Shown one piece after another: positions 44,946-60,730 of a stretch of 64,000 nucleotides of DNA. A program made the translations under genes and the position numbers. A model generated the notes under the pieces. The model was not told the DNA's origin. It saw only the letters and a program-made list of their open reading frames with translations, and made no database searches. Position 1 is the stretch's first letter. Each line of letters starts with the position of its first letter. Source of the DNA: Mytilus edulis (lineage: Eukaryota); contig NC_092346.1 of NCBI RefSeq assembly GCF_963676685.1, positions 64,170,001-64,234,000 of the forward strand. The letters are read 5' to 3'.

Positions 44946-47048
44946 GTAGGTTTCGAGAAACATATGGAGAAAAAAAAAATAAAAAAAAACTTTACACTTT
45001 GAACCTGAAATCACAGATTGAGTAATGAAAAAGATACATAATGGTATATCTGAATGGCTTTTATAGAGAATATTCATAAATAATGTCTTTAGCCATCTTA
45101 TCATAATGTGCATTTTTGTATGTGTCCTACATTGGATTAAAACATTGCTAATAATTTTCAAATCACATTTTAAACTTAGCCTTTTTTTTAAGGAAAAAAC
45201 ATTAATTGTTGATGGTAGCCTATATAAATGGTAGTGTTTCTCAAAAAGTTCTAAGAATTGTTATTCTTTGACCCCTAGTTCCCACTCCAGGTTAAGTCCT
45301 TCTGCTCAATCCTTCTGTAGACCTTTGACCCAGATCTATTCTCTCTTTATCTATCATCTCTATTCATGTTTTCCTGTCCAGTCAGTAAACTTTTCTTGCT
45401 CAACCTTTTTTTTTACTGACTAGGCATATGATAGAAGAAACAATGAGATATAAAAAAAAATAGAGAAGCGCTTGCATTCTTTAAAAAGAAATTACTGTTT
45501 TCTCTTGAAGTCACCTTGAAAGTACAGTCATAAACAACTGGTAAAAATGTGGAAATGAAAGTGAGCGAATTAAAGAAGATATTATCTAACTTTAATTGAC
45601 AATGATATCTTTAACAGAAGTAAGATCATTAGTATACTATTAATATTACATTCATACAAATTCTTGGCTCAAAAGATCGTCTTCCTAATTCATGATATAT
45701 TAATTTAAGCTCAACATAGAATCCTAACAACTGCTAGTTATATTATTTTATAAGGTCATTTATTTCATTTGAAACCGCTTATTATAATAAATATGTTTTG
45801 TGGTTTAAGTAAAAAGTAATGTATTGAGAAAGACCAACCAGTATTATATACCTAAGAAATTTCTTTTTGGGCAATACATTCATAGTTTTATATGAGAATG
45901 ATATTACAGAATAATAATTCTAGTCGAATAGGTGTATTTCATCATGAAGTCTTTCCACCATGGCCTATAAGGTATTTACATCCAACAGATTTTTTCCACA
46001 TGAAATTGTCAATTTTCATGAAGAATTTCAGTACCATTACGTTTCTGTATATATTACACAAAAACAGACTTTTATTCTCTGTTTCATGTAGTCAGTAATG
46101 TTGAAGATTGATTGTGCTTCAGAGGTGTTTTAAAAGTAAGATTACTAAAACTGAACATAAAATCTGAAAATAGCTTTTCCTACTGCATAATGAAATAAAT
46201 CATTGCAATCAATCAGAGTTGATTAGAATAATTGCTTTCATCAGGCAATATATTGTTATAACATGTGTTTTATACATACATGTGTTAATTGGTGAAATTT
46301 ATTAGATTCATAACTTGTTGCATGATTAGAATTGTGTAAATGAAATCCTATTGATAAAACAAGAATAAAATGAAATGATATCTTGTAAACTAAAACCCAA
46401 CAAGCATATTTAAAACCACTCCCAGGTAAATGTTTATGGGATTCAGAAGCTATAAATCGTTACTCTACACTTGATTTTAGATTTTCCTTTTTGAATTTTC
46501 CTCGGAGTTCAGTATTTTTGTGTTTTTACTTTTTTCTAATACAGGATAAAAATTCTAGTACCAAACTTAGAAAATTTCTCAGTAGAAAGGGGTCTAGAAA
46601 ATGCCTAAATTGTAATGAGGCTGTTAACGACCTAAACACAATTCTTCAAGAAACAGCTTTGGCTTCGGCCAAATTTATTAAAGGGCGCAAACAAATAAAC
46701 CAAAAAGAAAACCCTGGTTTTCAGGTTCATGCAATGGCTTAAATAAAATCGTTAAGCACTATGCCTTTCTTATAAATAAATTTCCATTTAATGGAGCTTA
46801 CAGAAAAGAATATTACTCCTATCGTTCAAAATTGAGGCGAAAATGTAAACAAAAAGAAAAAATATACAAGAATAAAATATGTTCAGATCTGTCCAATAAT
46901 ATCAAAAGTGACCCAAAATCCTTCTGGGACTTACTTAATAAATTGAAAGGAGTATCAGAAAATAATATTACAGAAAAACTGGATGAGCAAACATTCTATA
47001 TGCTCTTCAACTTTGTAATTGTTTGGCTTTATAAATATTTTGATATGA

Positions 47049-47092
47049 GCGTCACTGATGAGTCTTATGTAGACGAAACGCACGTCTGGCGT
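47049..47092 (+). ncRNA. Minimal type I hammerhead ribozyme motif in a ~128-bp Penelope/retrozyme-type insert (~47001-47128)
   Basis: Stem I GCGUCA/UGGCGU, CUGAUGA core, stem II GUCU-uaugu-AGAC, GAAA, short near-palindromic stem III ACGCACGU, GUC cleavage triplet ending at 47086. Insert flanked by a CTATA duplication. Confidence 0.75.
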
Positions 47093-47471
47093 ACTAAATT
47101 ATAATCCTGGTACCTTTGATAACTATAACTTCTTAAAAAAATTAAATTCTTGTGAAGCTCAACCAAAGGACAGTAAATTTCATAAAATGGTAATTTTTGA
47201 AATCTCAAGAAGAGATTTTATATGAATTTATAGGGTTAAATATACTTACCATGAAATTACATTTATAATATATAGAATATGTTTGCTTTCACAACATGTT
47301 CTCATCGCAATTAACTAGGTGATTAAAAATTACATCCATGAGATGTACTCACCTACGTCATAGTTCACCTGTGTAACATACACTAGCTTTAGTTTTAATT
47401 TGTCGTTTAATTGAATAATTTCAATTAAGTGAACAAAAAACTGAATTTATTCCAGGGGTGGTGGTGGATTG

Positions 47472-47596
47472 TGGTAAGTATATTTAACCCTATAAATTCA
47501 TATAAAATCTCTTCTTGAGATTTCAAAAATTACCATTTTATATGAATTTGGTTAAATATACTTACCATGAAATTACATTTATAATATATAGAATAT
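47472..47596. repeat. Internal complementary region (ICR) of the DIRS-type element
   Basis: 47472-47539 is the reverse complement of the left terminus including its extension; 47536-47596 is the reverse complement of the right terminus. Confidence 0.9.
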
Positions 47597-50500
47597 TTAC
47601 TGATTAACAAGCAGTATTTCATTTGGTGGAGGATAAATTCTCTCACACACATACAATTTCAACATATAAAAAATTATGTGAATTTTTTTTAAAAAGTAAC
47701 TCCATTAAATTTTGTAAATACGGATATTAGTAAAAACCGAAATTACTGAATTTATTATACAATGAAGCTATGCTGCATAACTATATGTATCAATGGCAAA
47801 CTTTGCAGATTGTATAAATACAAGTATGCAAAATTAATAGACTTGATGTAGAGTTGTCTCAATGGCACTCACATGTATATATATACCCCATCTTTCTATA
47901 TCTGATGAATAAATAATCTGCAGGTCAGTATAGAAATAATTATATTAAAGCTCCTTCATTATGAGCTAAATGTGTTGTAATATTTATGCAACAGTAAATA
48001 AGCATTTATTTCTGAATAGGTTGTTCTTGTTGCTTGTACAAATCGACAAGAACTAATCCAACCTTAATTTCATTACTTTCCACTTTGAAACTAAGTTTAT
48101 TTGGAAACATTATTACCTTTCTTTGACTTTCCATTGTTTTCTCTATATTAATATAATAACAGATAATATATGATTGCTGTCGTCTTTTGATAACCTGATA
48201 AATATCACATCTTTCGAAATAAATTCTTTTCTACTTAATTAAAGAATTATAATCAATTAAAATATACTTTGTAAATAGGTGTCCTTAATACAATCAAAGT
48301 TTATTAAAGACTCAAACCAAAGTTGTTTCATGATTATGCTAAATCTGGATTAATCTTTAAACTTTTTTAAAGTTATAGTCCCTGAGAATTTGCTTCTCTG
48401 CTAGATATACTACTTTTAATATTTTATAGATTTAGAATAAAATATTTTCATCAAGAGAAGTATTGTACTATTGTATAATGACAATTCTCTAAACTGACTA
48501 AATTTAAAAAATCTGATAAAATTTCTATGAGTGGTAGAACCTTTGAATACAATGTCTACCATTTCAACCATGAACAATATTTTTGTTTTGTATTGGACTA
48601 CTCAAGTGTAAAAATACAGAAAAGGACAAATCAGTGGAAAAGTTTCAGTATACATGTTTCCATTGATATACTGCTTCCACAGAACATTTGGATGTTGAGC
48701 TGAATTAAAGCCATGATTGTTGTCCTTATAAGTCCAAAAAGAATGCTAACAGATGATTTTCTCCAGCTATGAAAAATCTGTCTAAAATAAAATGTTTTGA
48801 TATTTCTAATTAACATTCACAACGGTTAACTTTCTAGAATATCTTGCCATGTACAGTTCCAAATTTAAAGAAACAAAAATTTGACATAATGAACAACTCT
48901 TGTATGTTGCTCTTGACAATTGTTTATATTAATTTCAGAAATTATTTCGCTATCAGAAATACTAAAATGCAACTTGTCAAATATAGTTCTATAGTTGTAT
49001 TTAAAGAAAAACACTTGTTTGGCAATATGGAAAACACTTGTACCAACTTGCAGTATCCTTAAGTGTTCTTAGTTATTTCAGAAATGGTTTCACTATCAAA
49101 AATGCTCATTTTATTTCTGTCTTGGTTCACCTCATCTGAATCCTATACATTCTGATATGATTCAATATATATCAACCAAACAGCTTTTGGTAGTATTTTG
49201 TGACTTCAACCCATTCATTTGGTTAACTTAGTCACTCAGAAGAATTTTGCATTTGTCCCCAGATTTGGCAAAAACAAAATTAATGTGATTTAAATAATCA
49301 CATCTTTCAAAACAATATTGAATCAAAATTCAAAGTAATTTTTAAAATAAACACATTTCAATTATGTGTAGCATATTCTTGCATAAGATACTAACTGTAT
49401 GCTATATATTTATATTATTCTGGCTGGTAATATGGAAATTGAAAAGTGAATAATTACCATCAATTCCGAGGTTAAAATCACATGCATTCGGAAAACCTTC
49501 CTGCATATAGATAATATACAACTTGACTTTGACCAGACTAGATTTTTGTAACTTTATGCTTATAATGAGCAAAAATAAAAATAAACAGTGACATTTTAAT
49601 ATTTAGGTATAATATTAAGAAAATGTCTCGCATTTGATTTGATATAATCATGGAATTATCATACTATATTTTACTTCCATGTACTATTCTTAGACTATTG
49701 AAAGCTATTTGCTAACTATTAATCAGTCTTTTAAATAAATTGCTTTTCCTACATTTTGCTGTAAGATTAACTGCTTCTACACTGGTGCTAAAATTTGAGA
49801 ACCAATTGAAATGTATATATATTATGTTTATATTGGTACATCATGTGTTACTCCAAAAAAAACCTCTTCTTTTTTTCTGCATCTCGTAAAGACTGACTAA
49901 ATAAAAGGTTTATATAAAGAGCTGTATAATAGATAGTTTCAAATCTTGAGAACTACTTCAATTTCCTAGACCATGTCTAGCATTTTAAATAAATCCTGCA
50001 TCCACAATGCTTTAAATCTTATTTATTTATTTACCAATATCTTACTAATTTTTTTACAAGATCTAAATTAATGATAATCTTGTTTCTATAAATAAGCATA
50101 TTTGAGTCCTCTATACTTCAGAATTCTGAATCAATATTTAACTCTAGGAAAAACAATGTGTAGCCATTGCATAAACTGTTTGGTTCTACCAATCTCACAT
50201 TAAGAATAAAACGGACCCAATGAATGAATCCTTATAGCAGAAACTTGCCCATCTGTTGGCATTGCTTAGAAAACTTAAGATGTAAATTAAGGCATAATTT
50301 TCTATCTTTAAAAGAGCATCCAAACTCCTTTTGCTTTCATGATTGGAAGATATATGTATAATTTGACAGTGATTCCCATATAGTGAGGGTAAGATAGTCT
50401 CTTAAGTCTTACGTTATCACCTTTTTTTTTTTTTTTTTTTTTTTTTGTACTCAAAACAAAACAGAATTAGTACATATTATATTTAATAAATGCATTGGCA

Positions 50501-51174
50501 ATGTACACTCTGAATTATGTAATCATTATATAAGCCATTACCTTGAATGAGTCTTTGTGAAATGCATCATGGCATCCCCTAAATTCTTTATTCAATAGAC
50601 AATCTAATGTTTACATAAAAACATATAAAAGCCTTTGTTTCCTTACTGCCGACAAAAACAAACAATTGGTTATAGCAGTTCATACTTATAATATTCATGT
50701 TCTTCTTGTCATAAGTAAACTGACCATGAAATTTAATATAAGTAAAAAGAGTTGTCACAAGCTATCAACTGTATTTAGAACAGTGCTCCATTCTTACTGT
50801 CTCCATGTCTGTTAGAGCATTGGAGAATTAATTATCAGTAAAAAAAAAAAAAAAAATAATTAAATATTTACAGCAATTTGCTGTTCTGGAAAAATATTTC
50901 AGGCTTCTAAGAATTACTGTCCTGATTTAAACTGGACATATTTAAAAGAAGTATGTATTGGTATGCTTAAACTACAATCACATTTGTATTGTACTAGATA
51001 ACAATGTATCATTTTCAGTGTCTTTAATATCTGTCTTGACTATTTCCAGACACTTGTTCAATATATTATCAATATGAGCAAATATGTTAATTGACTAAAC
51101 TGTTGGTTCATCACAAAAAACAATGTGCAACCAAATATTAGCTATGCTTGTGTTGTTTTAAAATATAATAAAAG

Positions 51175-51992
51175 TAGACATAATGTTCCCTGGGTGGAAG
51201 GATGTCTAGAAAAGTCAGATAGACCTGGACTTAAATTCACTAGTCTGATTCTAATTTATTTTATTTGCAACAATCATCCACGTGCAATTCTATGCTCCAT
51301 AAATATCAATGTGCAATAAATAAATAGTTATGATTTAATTTTATGTAAGATATCAAATCTGTATTTTATTAGAATGAATGCAACTTACAGATTCTAAATC
51401 ATGCATGTTGTTCTAGTTCCTATGTTTCCTGTATGAAACATGTCAACATTAATCAAATAGACTTGGGCAAAATCCCTATTCTATTTTAAGTCTATAGTGA
51501 TCCATTGAGCACGTTTTATTTTCAATAAATATGGTTTATGTTCCCTGAATGGAAGGTTAACCAAATAAACATCATCAGTTGTGGGCAAAATCCCTATTCT
51601 GATTGTGATGTATTTATCAACTGTTAAAACAGTATCACTGTTGGTCTACGCTCCCTGTATGGAACGTTTTCCAAATAAAACAATCAGAAATGGGCAGATT
51701 CCCTTTTCTGATTGAAATTTATTGAACCAATTGAGGTTCTAGTCACAATAGTGGTATACGCTCCCATACGGACGTTATCCACATTAAAATAATCAGATCT
51801 GGTCAAAATACCTATTCTGATTTAATAGTTATGTGTTTACACAGTCTCGTGTACCAGGTGTACACGTAACAGACTGCAAATTGTAAACAATCGAACCAAT
51901 TGAGGTTCTAGTGACAATAGTGGTATACGCTCCCATACGGACGTTTTCCACATGAAAAACAATCAGATCTGGTCATAATACCTATTCTGATT
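51175..51992. repeat. Array of six ~75-nt double-hairpin units with variable spacers inside the DIRS-type element
   Basis: Units at 51175-51250, 51405-51486, 51532-51604, 51641-51713, 51751-51822 and 51920-51992, with compensatory stem substitutions. The last two lie in a ~169-bp tandem duplication. Confidence 0.75.
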
Positions 51993-52720
51993 TTAATATA
52001 GTGATGTGTTTACACAGTCTCGTGTACAGACTGCAAATTGTAAACAATCGACTTTATCCAAACTTTAAACTCGACCCGTTTCGTAGCATTGCTCTAATGC
52101 AGTGAAAAATCCGGTCAGCTGAGCGTGAAAAAAGAAATAAACATCCGTTAAAATATATATCTTTTTAAAAACGTAGCACTCACGTAACATGTCCGATTTT
52201 GACAGCTAAATTCTGCCTTTCCTCGGACCCGATTTAATATTTGAAAATGGCGGCTAAACAAAGGTCATTTTCTATGTCGTCGTATTTCCAGACTCGTAAG
52301 CTGTAAAAATGACGAAAACGTGCATATCAGAAACTTGGCAGAAGCGCTGTATTCTGATTCACATTAAATTAATCGTATATCGATATTCCGAAAACAAATA
52401 ATGTCTTTTATAAAACATAAGGATTTTCAACAGTAAACTGTTAAAAATCCTTGCCGACGAGAAACATGCGTTCTCTTGAACGCAAAAATTAAAACTAAAG
52501 CTAGTGTATGTTACACAGGTGAACTATGACGTAGGTGAGTACATCTCATGGATGTAATTTTTAATCACCTAGTTAATTGCGATGAGAACATGTTGTGAAA
52601 GCAAACATATTCTATATATTATAAATGTAATTTCATGGTAAGTATATTTAACCAAATTCATATAAAACTAAATTTAAAAAATTAGATGAGCTAATTAATG
52701 CACTAAAAATCAATGATAAT

Positions 52721-53632
52721 ATGTCCTATAACCAACCAATAACATTAGATGAAATAGTTAAAGCCTCTAAAACCTTAAAAAATGGTAAATCCAGTGCAAA
52801 GGACTTGATTTCAAATGAAATGATTAAATATGGTATACCTGTACTAGTTGACCCTTTAACTAAATTACTTAACCTAATCTTCAAAGAAGGAACATTTCCT
52901 AAGGTATGGAATGAAAGTTTCATTTCTGTAATACACAAAAAGGGCAATAAGCTGGACCCTTCAAAATACAGAGGTATTTCTATAACCTCTAATCTGGGAA
53001 AATTATTCAATAAAATTATATATATGAGAATTACAAAATTCATGAATGAACACAACATTATTAGTGAAAACCAAATTGTATTTAAAGAAAAATCCCGTAC
53101 TTCAGATCACATCTTCACCTTAAAATCTATAATAAAACAAAAGAAAAATAAGAAACAGAAGGTGTTTGCTGCCTTTGTTGATCTCAAGAAGGCCTTTGAT
53201 ACAGTTTGGAGAAATGGATTATTTTATATCCTTTTGGAACTTAAATTACCCTGTAAACTTTTTAATATGATTCATTCTATGTATGATGATACTACATGTG
53301 GAATTAAATTCCAAAATGGTCTCAGTGAAGAGTTTGTCTCCAACCGTGGCGTTAAACAGGGAGATGTTCTCAGTCCGTTATTATTTAATCGTTACATAAA
53401 TAACTTGGTTAAAAGTCTCCAAGATGCTAATACAGATCCCATTGTAATTGGAGATACAACAATAAATTCCCTTTTATTTGCAGATGATTTACTTTTATTA
53501 TCAAATTCTGAAAAGGGATTACAAACAGCTTTAAATGTTCTTAGTGATTTTTGTAAATGCTGGAAACTAGAAGTTAACATAAACAAATCAAAAGTCATAA
53601 TATTTTTTTCTTTCTATGAAGAGATAACATAA
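52721..53632 (+). pseudogene. LINE reverse transcriptase domain (truncated ORF2)
   Basis: RT motifs YRGISI, FVDLKKAFDTV, GVKQGDVLSPLLF, LLFADD, LEVNINKSKVI. Cut off at the 3' end by an insertion. Confidence 0.93.
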
Positions 53633-53930
53633 AAAATGTGGTGCACACTGAATAACGTGCGTAGCGGGTTATTTAACAGTGTGCACCACATTTTTTATGT
53701 TATTTCAAATAGACAGATAAAATATTACAGTCATTTCTTATAATTTCTTATAAATTACTTACTTACTTACTTACTTATTTATTATTTAATTCTAAATTCC
53801 ATTTTAAACTGTAGAAAACCATGAAAAAACGTTGATGACGTCACGGTCACATTACTAAATTATGTCTATGGGCTGATAACAAAATAACGTCAGCCAATCA
53901 TAAGACGCGTGACATCCAAAATTAAATTAT
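53600..53930. mobile_element. Hairpin-containing interspersed element at the point where the LINE RT breaks off
   Basis: Palindrome at 53621-53706 (ATAACATAAAAAATGTGGTGCACACTG...CAGTGTGCACCACATTTTTTATGTTAT). Confidence 0.65.
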
Positions 53931-54376: not shown

Positions 54377-54576
54377 GAGGGGGGATAGGACCTTTATCGG
54401 GACTCCGGGATCGGGTGTTTTTAAGCTCGGGATTTCTGGATTGACCCTTTCGGGATCCGGGATTTTTTTTTTCGACTTTCGGGACTTCTGGATTTCGTGT
54501 TTTTAAGTCCGGGATTTCGGAATCTCATGTTTTTAAGCCCGGGATTTTGGGATCAGGACCCCTCCTACCCCCTCTC
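54377..54576. mobile_element. MITE with GAGGGGG termini and CGGGAT internal repeats, flanked by CTATAT
   Basis: GAGGGGGGATAGGA...TCCTACCCCCTCTC; 6-bp duplication; inserted in another repeat (~54340-55050). Confidence 0.7.
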
Positions 54577-57032
54577 CTATATGCTAACATTGCCTATGTA
54601 TATTTTAAAATTGATTGTATGCACATTGAACGACAAATCTATGTGACGTATAAAATTTTCTGACGTCAGACACACAAATCAATGAATGTGTTTGTAGATA
54701 GATGTTTTTGTGTTCTGTTAAATTGTTCCTTTTAAAATTGTTATACGATGATGACTGATGTACCCATATTTTGACTATTTTATTTAATGTGTCTGTTTAG
54801 TTAACGCATCAATGTAAATATAACGGAATTTGATGAGACTGTCATCAAAGTGAGAGGGTTAGCGCTATAAAACCAGGTTTAATCCACCATTTTCTACATT
54901 TGATAATGTCTGTATCAAGTCAGGAATATAACAGTTCTTGTCCATTCAATTTTGATGCGTTTTGTTATTTGATTTTGCCATGTGATTATGGACTTTCCGA
55001 ATTGATTTTCCTCTAAGTTCAGTATTTTTGTGATTTTACTTTTTTTTTTGCACTATGTCAGAATTAGGTTTTTGGCCAAACTGTAAAAAGATATGAGTAT
55101 GGGATGAAATGTCTGGACAACTTTAATCTGTTTTAATAAAACAAGGTTTTATCTTAGGAATGTAAATATAAACAGGACCAATTTCCCGACCAAATATATT
55201 TTAATAGAACATGTCCTGTCGGTCCTGTGCTAATTTGGAGGATTGTATGAAAACGTATGAAATTAAACAAAATCTTTTTTTATTATTTCAATCCTTTTGG
55301 TATTGAAGTTTCAGACTTTTATTTTTAAAATAAGAAAAACAGGAATATCAAGCAATCATTATACACAGCTGTTATTTGTTATATTTAAAAAAAATTCAGA
55401 TGTATTCTTTCTTAAATTTGCTTTTCATTGACATAGCTGTCAATCTTATTGCTGACCTTTTGTATTGAATATTTGGATCAATAGTAATTTTGCTTCTGTA
55501 TCAATATTGTTTCCTTAGACAAATGTCTAGGACTCCATTATGATAGGATAATCACAACTCTGTCCATCATGAGCAGAATTGTGAAACGTCATATCTATGG
55601 AGGTGTCTAACAGACTTTATTGACTTTTTGCATTGATAATTCTCTTGTCAAACCTATTTGAAACACTTGATAACACACTGTAATGACAGAATATAAATAG
55701 ACCAATGGTGGAGGACAATAGGATTAATTCACTTGGGCGTATGGACATATTTAAGATCCGTTGGACAGGATGTAGCAGTTTTGGACTAATTAAGGAGTAG
55801 AATCTGGATGAAAATGATCAAGATAATAATGTGGTCAATATTTATCACATATAGGTCTTGGGGGGGAAAAAAACCAAAGGGACAGTTTTTTTCTACCCTC
55901 AAAATATTGATGTAAAAAAATTCCTACATTTTAGACAAAAGTACTTAAACATTTATTGATTGTTGTTGTTTCTCACCACTTTCAGCTCTATTTGTTTTTA
56001 TTAGCGAAGGAAGCCTGACTGTCTACCAGAAAACTGTCAATCCAACTCAACTAAGATTGGAGTCAAGCGCACCTGCAATGTGCAAGATTTCAAACTCACA
56101 ACCTCAGTGCTGACAGGCCACTCACAACCTCAGTGCTGACAGGCCAGTGATACACGAGTTACTACTTAGACTACTATGTCACTGATTACTAAAGAAGATG
56201 ATTATCTAATAGTTCAATGAGGTCCTGATGGAAGTGTTGGTCTATCTCAATTTACACTTTTATTTTTATGGCAATGGCATTTGGTGCTTCCTATGTCAAT
56301 CTTTTTGTCATATATCTCTATCTGAAATCAAACAGTTGTCTGGAATAATTCTGCAGATATTAGCCTGATTTTGGTATGTTGGGGTAAATTGATGACTTAC
56401 AGTCTTATTATGCTTCTTCCTGGTTGTCTGACTATGTCCTAGATGCATTTACAAAGTCTGGAATTTCCTAAATACATGTATTGTATTTTTTTGGCTTTTT
56501 GCTTGCAATGTCTTCAATAGAGAACTGTTTTTGTGGTAAATTAGTTTACAACATGTATAATGGTGTCAGATTAACAGATTGAGTTTTTTTTCTGTAATAC
56601 AGACTTTTCACGAAATTTGCATACACACACTTAAAGATGTATAGTTGAGTTTATGAAGACGAGATTTGTAAGGTCTTTGGTGTGATGAGGCCAATTTCTA
56701 TAATGAAAGATAAATAATTTAATGGTGCCCTTTTTTCAATGCCTATAACTATGTTTTGTTGCTTCTTTAAATTGTGGGGCTTTGGTGTTTGAGTGTTGGA
56801 AGTAGTTCATCTACTGAAACACTAGGCTGTCAAAACTGTGGTTGTCAGTTTGAACTGGTTATGTGGCAGGCAAGTTCAACTTTTATCCTTGAGTTGGATT
56901 CACAATTTTCCTGTAGAAAGTCAGTGGTTCTCTTTAGACACTCTGACTTCCTCCACCAATGAAAACTGACCACAATAATATAGCCAATAGGGAGGTGGCT
57001 TTAAACACCAACAATCAATCAATTATTTCTGG

Positions 57033-57494
57033 TTTCAAACATCATACAGAATAAGTGGATAGACCTTTCAAACATCATACAGAATAAGTGGATAGACCTA
57101 TCAAACATCATACAGAATAAGTGGATAGACCTTTCAAACATCATACAGAATAAGTGGATAGACCTTTCAAACATCATACAGAATAAGTGGATAGACCTTT
57201 CAAACATCATACAGAATAAGTCGATAGACCTTTCAAACATCATACAGAATAAGTCGATAGACCTTTCAAACATCATACAGAATAAGTCGATAGACCTTTC
57301 AAACATCATACAGAATAAGTCGATAGACCTTTCAAACATCATACAGAATAAGTGGATAGACCTTTCAAACATCATACAGAATAAGTCGATAGACCTTTCA
57401 AACATCATACAGAATAAGTGGATAGACCTTTCAAACATCATACAGAATAAGTCGATAGACCTTTCAAACATCATACAGAATAAGTCGATAGACC
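57033..57494. repeat. 33-bp minisatellite, 14 copies
   Basis: Unit TTTCAAACATCATACAGAATAAGT(G/C)GATAGACC; head-to-tail without spacers. Confidence 0.97.
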
Positions 57495-59774: not shown

Positions 59775-60730
59775 TGTAAATGCTCTTTTGTTCCGACATT
59801 GGAAAGTTCCGGGCGGAAAGAACTTCCTCTGGTTTAAAAGTTCCACCGGAACAAAGTGACTAGTTGAAAAGTTCCAACGGAACATTTCAACTAGTTAGAA
59901 AGTTCCTTTTTGCAAAATTAGTCAAAACCGGAACTAACAAACTAGCCCAAAAGTTCCAATGGAACTTATTCACCAGGCAGAAAGTTCCATTTGGAGAATA
60001 AATGCAAAGTAAAAGCTCAACATATTTTATTTGAACTTTTCAAAGGGAAACCAAAATACTGATTACAAAAGTCAAAAGGAACTTATCAATTAGTCACAAA
60101 GTTTCTCTTCGGCAAATAAGTCAAAACCGGAACTAACAAACTAGCCCAAAAGTTCCAATGGAACTTATCAACCAGTCCCAAAGTTCCATTGGAGAATTGA
60201 TGCAAAGACCCACATGAGGGTACTATGAATACTAAATTTGTATGATAATGCAACTTATTCTGTTTTATATGAGCTATGAAATACAACTTAAATTTTGCTG
60301 GGGGAGTTTGTTCTTCCCCCTCAGTACATCATGTACATCAAAATTTAAATACATTTTCATTATTTCCCCAAATATAAAGTTCCATGCCACATTTTTCATA
60401 TTTGTCCTCAAAGAAACCCCTTTCAGTGTGTTGGGTATTCTTGTAAATTAATGATTTGCTCTTATATATACTGATACTCATTATTCCCCTTCTTTCTACA
60501 AAAAGGACGAAATATGGTATATTCAGAATGATGTAACTAGTTGTTCTGTTCCGCCAGAACTATTCAACTAGCTACATTGTTCCAGGACTTTTCAACTAGC
60601 TACCTTTTTCTGGAACTTTTCGACTGCACTCAGAATAAAACAACTAGTTGGAATGTTCCATCGGAAAGAAATAAATAGTTGAAAAGTTCTGCCGGAACAA
60701 AGTAACTGACGGAACATAGTGGCTGTTACA
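59775..60730. mobile_element. Ginger-like non-autonomous DNA transposon (TGT...ACA termini, 4-bp TSD CATA)
   Basis: TGTAA...GTTCCG / CGGAAC...TTACA termini, CATA on both sides, many AAAGTTCC/GGAAC subterminal repeats. Confidence 0.7.

Follow-up and report, generated by a model that had tools for sequence, protein, structure and literature searches.

The window analysed is a 64-kb stretch of Mytilus edulis DNA containing no N (contig NC_092346.1, positions 64,170,001 to 64,234,000). It carries, at 47182-52667, a 5.5-kb non-coding insert with the full ITR/ICR geometry of a DIRS1-type element. The two ITR arms (47234-47401 and 52486-52653) are complementary at 168 of 168 positions. The 5' (left) terminus (52486-52667, minus strand) consists of the 168-nt conserved ITR and a 14-nt outer part that is matched only by the ICR, while the 3' (right) terminus (47182-47401, minus strand) consists of a 52-nt outer extension and the 168-nt conserved ITR. 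Two ICRs were identified at 47472-47596 (minus strand), laid out as in PMC3266345. One (47536-47596) is complementary at 61/61 positions to the end of the 5' terminus (52607-52667), the other (47472-47541) at 70/70 positions to the end of the 3' terminus (47182-47251), and the two overlap by 6 nt. DIRS1-like elements possess two ICRs by the 3' terminus, each complementary to one of the outer ends, and the short circular junction is where they overlap (PMC3266345); the sense strand of the element is therefore the minus strand of the window. The element is a DIRS1-type retrotransposon of a Mytilus mussel, young and non-autonomous.

The element inserted precisely into the ORF2 of a LINE on the plus strand (RVT_1, E 8e-41), which remains upstream at 46832-46996 and 47103-47187 and downstream at 52668-53632. 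Its left half aligns to residues 10-68 of a homologue and its right half to residues 108-400 of the same one, and its frame reaches 47187 and picks up again at 52668, giving a clean reading of the empty site. The LINE reverse transcriptase is 95% identical to a fragment annotated as Mytilus edulis. The motif ATAAAA is present at both element junctions and once in the ICR junction; integration occurred without target-site duplication, at a short sequence that the site has in common with the junction, as is found for DIRS-type elements. The LINE carries other interruptions. An insertion of ~110 nt (about 46997-47112) also splits ORF2, 90 nt to the left of the DIRS-type element, and bears a type I hammerhead motif at 47049-47092 on the plus strand (Rfam Hammerhead_1, 30.1 bits, E 3e-5, gathering score 34); it is probably a retrozyme or a Penelope-related fragment. 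Where the truncated RT ORF ends, 53621-53706 holds 30-bp arms that are 97% complementary and separated by a 26-nt gap, with weak matches to plant miRNA families of Rfam on both strands, far under gathering. A small foldback or a MITE probably inserted here and truncated the LINE.

The interior of the DIRS1-type element (47597-51171, minus strand) is non-coding, with no ORF longer than 72 aa, a CpG observed/expected ratio (o/e) of 0-0.24, and T25 and A17 runs. A scan of ten interior ORFs against Pfam identified no Gag, RT or recombinase domain, the sole match being a chance-level hit to DUF3501 (E 0.11, 13 bits against a cut-off of 25). The lack of longer ORFs and of these domains marks the element as non-autonomous or non-coding. 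DIRS1-like elements and their non-autonomous derivatives, such as TOC1 of Chlamydomonas, a known active non-autonomous DIRS, have the same inverted termini, two overlapping ICRs, absence of target duplication and use of proteins supplied in trans; the present element differs from DIRS1-like elements in that searches revealed no remnant of gag, RT or YR. Within the interior, the T25 run (50422-50446) and the A17 run (50840-50856) are in inverted arrangement and flank a segment of 393 nt, possibly a nested insertion of retroposed or foldback type.

Downstream of the 5' ITR, in the sense of the element, lies a CpG-island-like leader (52040-52485, minus strand) with 26 CpG and an o/e of 1.83; the window as a whole has 0.58. 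The segment is a candidate for an internal promoter or for a leader free of methylation. Small palindromes were observed in it, among them a near-perfect one of 16 bp (52419-52452) and one forming a hairpin with a 7-bp stem (52467-52484). The leader is followed, 670-1500 nt from the 5' end of the element, by an array of six related units at 51172-51998. An earlier note made from the sequence alone had named an inferred 5' ITR and the CpG-rich segment; the ITR/ICR geometry and this segment were confirmed, which puts the array within the 5' leader of the non-coding element.

The array was delimited using a covariance model built from its units and run, with filters off, on both strands of the 64 kb. 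The earlier note had described six double-hairpin units in which pairing is kept; the model found exactly six, all folding as described, with scores of 62-94 bits against 20 bits for the next-best match in the 64 kb. No seventh unit was found in the window by covariance-model, motif or BLAST searches. Each unit folds into two short hairpins with an A-rich linker between them. The stems are of 4+3+3 and 7+3 bp, and hairpin 2 has a symmetry of 13-6-13. The loops, CTGNAT and CAAAAT, are kept across the units together with the linker, while the spacers between units decay; the stems, like the loops, are more conserved than the spacers. The consensus structure predicted by RNAalifold contains hairpin 2 and, of hairpin 1, the inner stem.

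The units, listed here without strand, differ in how their stems are built. U1 (51172-51256; covariance-model match 62.4 bits; MFE -18.5 kcal/mol, 25 pairs) is the most diverged, its hairpin 1 possessing its own perfect 7-bp outer stem (TAGACAT/ATGTCTA) and a TTCC/GGAA inner stem and its hairpin 2 having been rebuilt. In U2 (51411-51492), hairpin 1 is a continuous 8 bp that includes ATGTTTC/GAAACAT, and the arms of hairpin 2 read AAATAGA/TCTATTT rather than AATCAGA/TCTGATT. The flanks of U3 (51527-51610) give hairpin 2 an additional 5-bp stem. U4 (51637-51719; covariance-model match 94.3 bits) is the best-formed unit, with the stem of hairpin 2 extended to 10 bp. U5 (51747-51828) carries the variants GTGG/CCAC and GGT/ACC, the alternatives being TTGG/CCAA and GGG/CCC, and U6 (51916-51998) is a copy of U5 plus its spacer, ~90% identical. 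All of these stem sequences had been quoted in the earlier note, and a listing of the pairs showed each to be present. Stem extensions differ from unit to unit, and the architecture of hairpin 1 drifts among units, its stem positions sliding.

No Rfam family matched the array, either at E<=5 in a search of the part of the window from 48 to 56 kb or at gathering scores in a search of the whole window, so that the Rfam comparison suggested earlier yielded no match, and ARAGORN found no tRNA. Unit motifs, exact or degenerate, had 0 matches in metagenome, viral and prokaryote-genome collections, a result of little weight given that these hold no animal genomes, and 17-mers of the units were absent from the literature text searched. 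For a 44-aa ORF running across U3 and U4, HMMER against 1.8 billion proteins gave one match, P0001, which was rejected as spurious, as it is the translation of an unrelated low-complexity tandem repeat.

The units are separated by 154, 34, 26, 27 and 87 nt, intervals that had been described earlier as variable spacers. The term suggests units set among unrelated spacers, which is not the design of the array. The starts of the spacers align between periods, and BLAST HSPs with 69-72% identity cross a unit, its spacer and the following unit. What repeats is thus the whole period of ~110 bp, in diverged tandem copies. The spacer portion is the fastest-evolving part of the period and changes by indels. 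An arrangement of repeats with unique, unrelated spacers (CRISPR-like) was not found in the array.

Every spacer bears a small hairpin of its own. That between U3 and U4 (51620-51642) has a direct-inverted-direct layout of ACTGTT, AACAGT and ACTGTT, and that between U4 and U5 (51724-51739) is GAACC-N6-GGTTC, which recurs at 51893-51908. A larger third hairpin, H3, is present after U5 and after U6. The longer interval between U5 and U6 is the result of a duplication of ~170 bp (~90% identity) and a 16-nt indel, by which H3a (51834-51889) differs from H3b (52007-52046; stems of 8 bp and 6 bp). The extra segment of H3a contains an inverted copy of the neighbouring CGTGTAC, which creates an additional perfect 7-bp stem. 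According to PMC3266345 and PMC7192593, the termini of DIRS elements are rebuilt from the ICR in each cycle. As the termini here are identical to the ICR and U5 and U6 differ by ~10%, we infer that the array already existed at the last transposition and was carried along by the element.

Maintenance of pairing was measured in two ways. In a MAFFT alignment of the units, 80.8% of pair cells are canonical, against 73.9% after shuffling (0/500 shuffles as high) and 38-56% with slid partners, and 7 pairs have changed on both sides. In a structure-guided register with the best-formed unit, U4, as reference, a choice that somewhat inflates the counts, homologous Watson-Crick pairs number 19/20 in U2, 15/20 in U3 (16/20 canonical with one G-T wobble) and 20/20 in each of U4, U5 and U6, U5 and U6 sharing history. 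Simulations were started from U4, with the observed number of substitutions (20-24) placed at random, and left a mean of 12-13 surviving pairs. Under uniform mutation the probability of at least the observed number of pairs is 6e-5 for U5, 1.4e-4 for U2 and 0.07 for U3; when only Watson-Crick pairs were counted, with transition-only mutation and a 3-fold GC bias, it was still <= 3e-4 for U5 and U2, a bound that held in every point-mutation model tried. From U4 to U5, 4/20 substitutions fall in the 40 stem positions, against 9.6 expected, and 4/4 are compensated. Two of the compensated pairs are transversions outside CpG. The folding energies of whole units are also better than those of mutated controls, less sharply. 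These data come from six paralogous units at a single locus, and two of the units are recent duplicates. Independent point mutation is rejected for the array; some process keeps the arms complementary.

The earlier note had gone further and read the compensatory changes as selection on the structure of RNA or single-stranded DNA. The part of this claim concerning pairing beyond neutral point mutation stood. The step to selection did not follow, given that no signal specific to RNA was found, that footprints of template switching are present and that one of the "compensations" is CpG decay. The ACG/CGT of U4-U6 has become ATG/CAT in U2 by CpG decay on both arms, from which the T-A pair results automatically, and three changes in U2 are C>T on one arm and G>A on the opposite arm. 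Compensatory change alone does not imply selection on RNA. Intrastrand template switching can create and maintain perfect hairpins without selection, homogenising their arms and inverting their loops (PMC8794818, PMC8604942, PMC5453318). The inverted copy in the H3a indel, the direct-inverted-direct layout between U3 and U4 and a likeness between loops are marks of this process, the last being weak and suggestive only: the loop of hairpin 1 in U5 and U6 resembles the reverse complement of that in U2-U4, with GTAT shared. Idiosyncratic palindromes are found in the spacers and the leader as well, which suggests a regional tendency to form inverted repeats.

These footprints support the main rival to a function in single-stranded nucleic acid, namely that the array is a palindromic minisatellite without such a function, dyad-symmetric from the start, in which intrastrand switching during replication or reverse transcription maintains and even perfects self-complementarity and symmetric GC-to-AT and CpG decay helps by turning C-G into T-A pairs. 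We regard this as possible, if on the unlikely side. The mechanism is documented in the three studies cited above, and the array shares with template-switch hairpins perfect Watson-Crick arms, multi-base matched changes and an indel with an inverted copy (PMC8794818); the stem extensions specific to single units and the opposite-arm changes of U2 are likewise accommodated. Other blocks of the window are equally structured: a 901-nt region over the array folds with z of -8.2 on the plus and -10.5 on the minus strand relative to dinucleotide shuffles, yet its kb block ranks 4th of 64 by excess folding energy, strongly but not uniquely structured, and the density of perfect-stem hairpins per kb does not discriminate the array from the rest. 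Template switching is, however, a mutational process and not a functional class, and it does not predict conserved loops and linkers beside decaying spacers. The shortage of stem substitutions and the two transversion pairs outside CpG are also left unexplained by a minisatellite, and to retain 12/12 hairpins while unit identity is down to 60-70%, switching events would have to occur locally at a very high rate. Should template switching alone keep the pairing, the array would be a compact natural example of mutation bias mimicking compensatory evolution, and a warning to those who infer RNAs from covariation in genomes rich in repeats.

Pairing within the array is almost exclusively of the Watson-Crick type (~97% of pairs), which also fits a minisatellite, as does the equivalence of the two strands. 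G-T pairs account for 5/132 on the plus and 3/129 on the minus strand, and the unit energies sum to -126.0 and -123.9 kcal/mol, respectively. A strand-specific signal, in the form of G-U pairs or unequal folding of the strands, was not found in the six units. With G-T pairs rare on both strands and energies equal, the data do not distinguish RNA from DNA or sense from antisense.

Double-stranded DNA was considered as well, the repeats then being promoter or enhancer monomers, or palindromic sites for a dimeric host factor or for the DIRS recombinase. The array adjoins the CpG-island-like leader, its CpG o/e drops from 1.8 to 0 away from the 5' end of the element and is zero beyond, and the youngest duplicate units are 5'-proximal. 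The 5' monomers of mouse L1 are promoters of ~200 bp; like those of the array, they are tandem, CpG-rich and located at the 5' end of a retroelement, with the youngest copies on the 5' side and increasingly degenerate ones further in. Mouse L1 monomers are not known for covarying hairpins. The 13-6-13 symmetry of hairpin 2 would suit a dimeric protein, and the window holds another element with palindromic repeated motifs. That element, at 59.8-60.7 kb, served as a contrast, as the variants of its GTTCC-N3-GGAAC family lack compensation. Matched changes in both half-sites are unexpected for a sequence-specific dimer, and the compensation seen in the array and missing from this family argues against plain double-strand protein sites. 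We consider a double-stranded function unlikely.

A foreign origin was assigned a still smaller probability. According to this explanation, the array would be unrelated to DIRS biology, a repeat that the element captured or that became nested in it, such as a satDNA-like array borne by a Helentron/HINE or MITE. Short tandem arrays with palindromes carried by transposable elements are common in bivalves (PMC7492417), and the present array resembles those of HINE/Helentron, pearl, DTC84 and MgE in having up to about six monomers within a mobile element together with palindromes (PMC7492417, PMC3879986). The rest of the element interior is anonymous AT-rich DNA with poly-T and poly-A runs, and a palindrome follows the last monomer. 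Of the features of HINE/Helentron elements that were looked for (subTIRs, a left-flank microsatellite and a 3' palindrome), only the palindrome is present. The array differs from the bivalve examples in having no subTIRs of Helentron type, no microsatellite module, a monomer of ~110 bp instead of ~160 bp and a carrier of DIRS type; a candidate subterminal inverted repeat (50866-50888 versus 52020-52047) scores within the random range of the window. The array also grades continuously into the CpG-rich leader, which speaks against a captured repeat.

The earlier note had further proposed a precursor of small RNAs, and such a precursor, whether miRNA-, piRNA- or snoRNA-like, is highly improbable. 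Tandem hairpins are present, and the double hairpin with its A-rich hinge superficially resembles H/ACA RNAs. The stems of 4+3+3 and 7+3 bp are too short, however, clusters of miRNA type requiring ~20 bp or more, and the units show neither ACA nor terminal motifs in addition to the lack of Rfam matches. Readings of the units as H/ACA snoRNA, miRNA or tRNA-SINE were ruled out by stem length and missing motifs.

The explanation that we favour, tentatively and at somewhat less than an even chance, sees in the hairpin pairs multiplied cis-acting modules on the RNA or single-stranded cDNA of the element, read by DIRS proteins supplied in trans. Conserved loops and linker beside decaying spacers are the pattern expected of constrained modules. 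A non-coding family that is mobilised in trans carries only what its mobilisation needs, which makes a conserved and multiplied hairpin module in the leader a candidate signal. Counting against this explanation are the six paralogous units at one locus, two of them recent duplicates, and also the absent strand signal, the drift of hairpin 1, the regional palindromes, the footprints of template switching and the CpG decay on two arms.

Each monomer of ~110 bp has a pair of short hairpins and an A-rich linker, all conserved, along with a spacer that evolves fast and forms a hairpin of its own. As cis-acting modules, the hairpins would act on a single-stranded form of the element, be it sense RNA and/or the linear single-stranded cDNA reported for DIRS-1. 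Gag, RT or recombinase of an autonomous DIRS, supplied in trans, would recognise them, and recognition would lead to the packaging or processing of the non-coding parasite. Template switching is probably the source of many of the matched arm changes, and selection at the level of the element would filter the variants, retaining hairpins and loops. More doubtful is the specific scenario in which a DIRS parasite without proteins multiplied a double-hairpin recognition module six-fold and so captures the Gag, RT or recombinase of autonomous DIRS on its RNA or single-stranded cDNA.

Packaging signals of retroviruses and LTR retrotransposons offer a parallel. They lie in the 5' leader, consist of short covarying stems with conserved loops and allow trans-complementation of defective genomes; hairpins of the leader are the classical retroviral packaging signals, and gammaretroviral Psi has a conserved double-hairpin core. 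Those signals are single-copy, whereas the array consists of six tandem monomers for which a function is put forward from sequence features. For DIRS-type elements, cis requirements are not known to have been mapped beyond the ITRs and the ICR. A limited search of the literature turned up no report of tandem hairpins arrayed in the leader of a DIRS element. If the hairpins were a recognition module, their stems held by compensatory evolution, tyrosine-recombinase retrotransposons would have their first defined cis-acting signal for packaging or processing.

Other repeats were observed in the window to the right of the element. The GTTCC-N3-GGAAC palindrome is borne by repeats of ~31 nt that form two oppositely oriented clusters within the element at 59818-60730; these look like the subterminal transposase-binding repeats of a DNA transposon. 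At 54397-54554, a CGGGAT-rich tandem repeat of 30 nt (TRF score 101, 2.5 copies) adjoins a GC-richer stretch, and a repeat finder reports four copies of 45 nt over the same positions. An ORF of 151 aa at 57019-57474 on the minus strand consists throughout of an 11-residue repeat, being a 33-nt minisatellite that is read through and not a gene.
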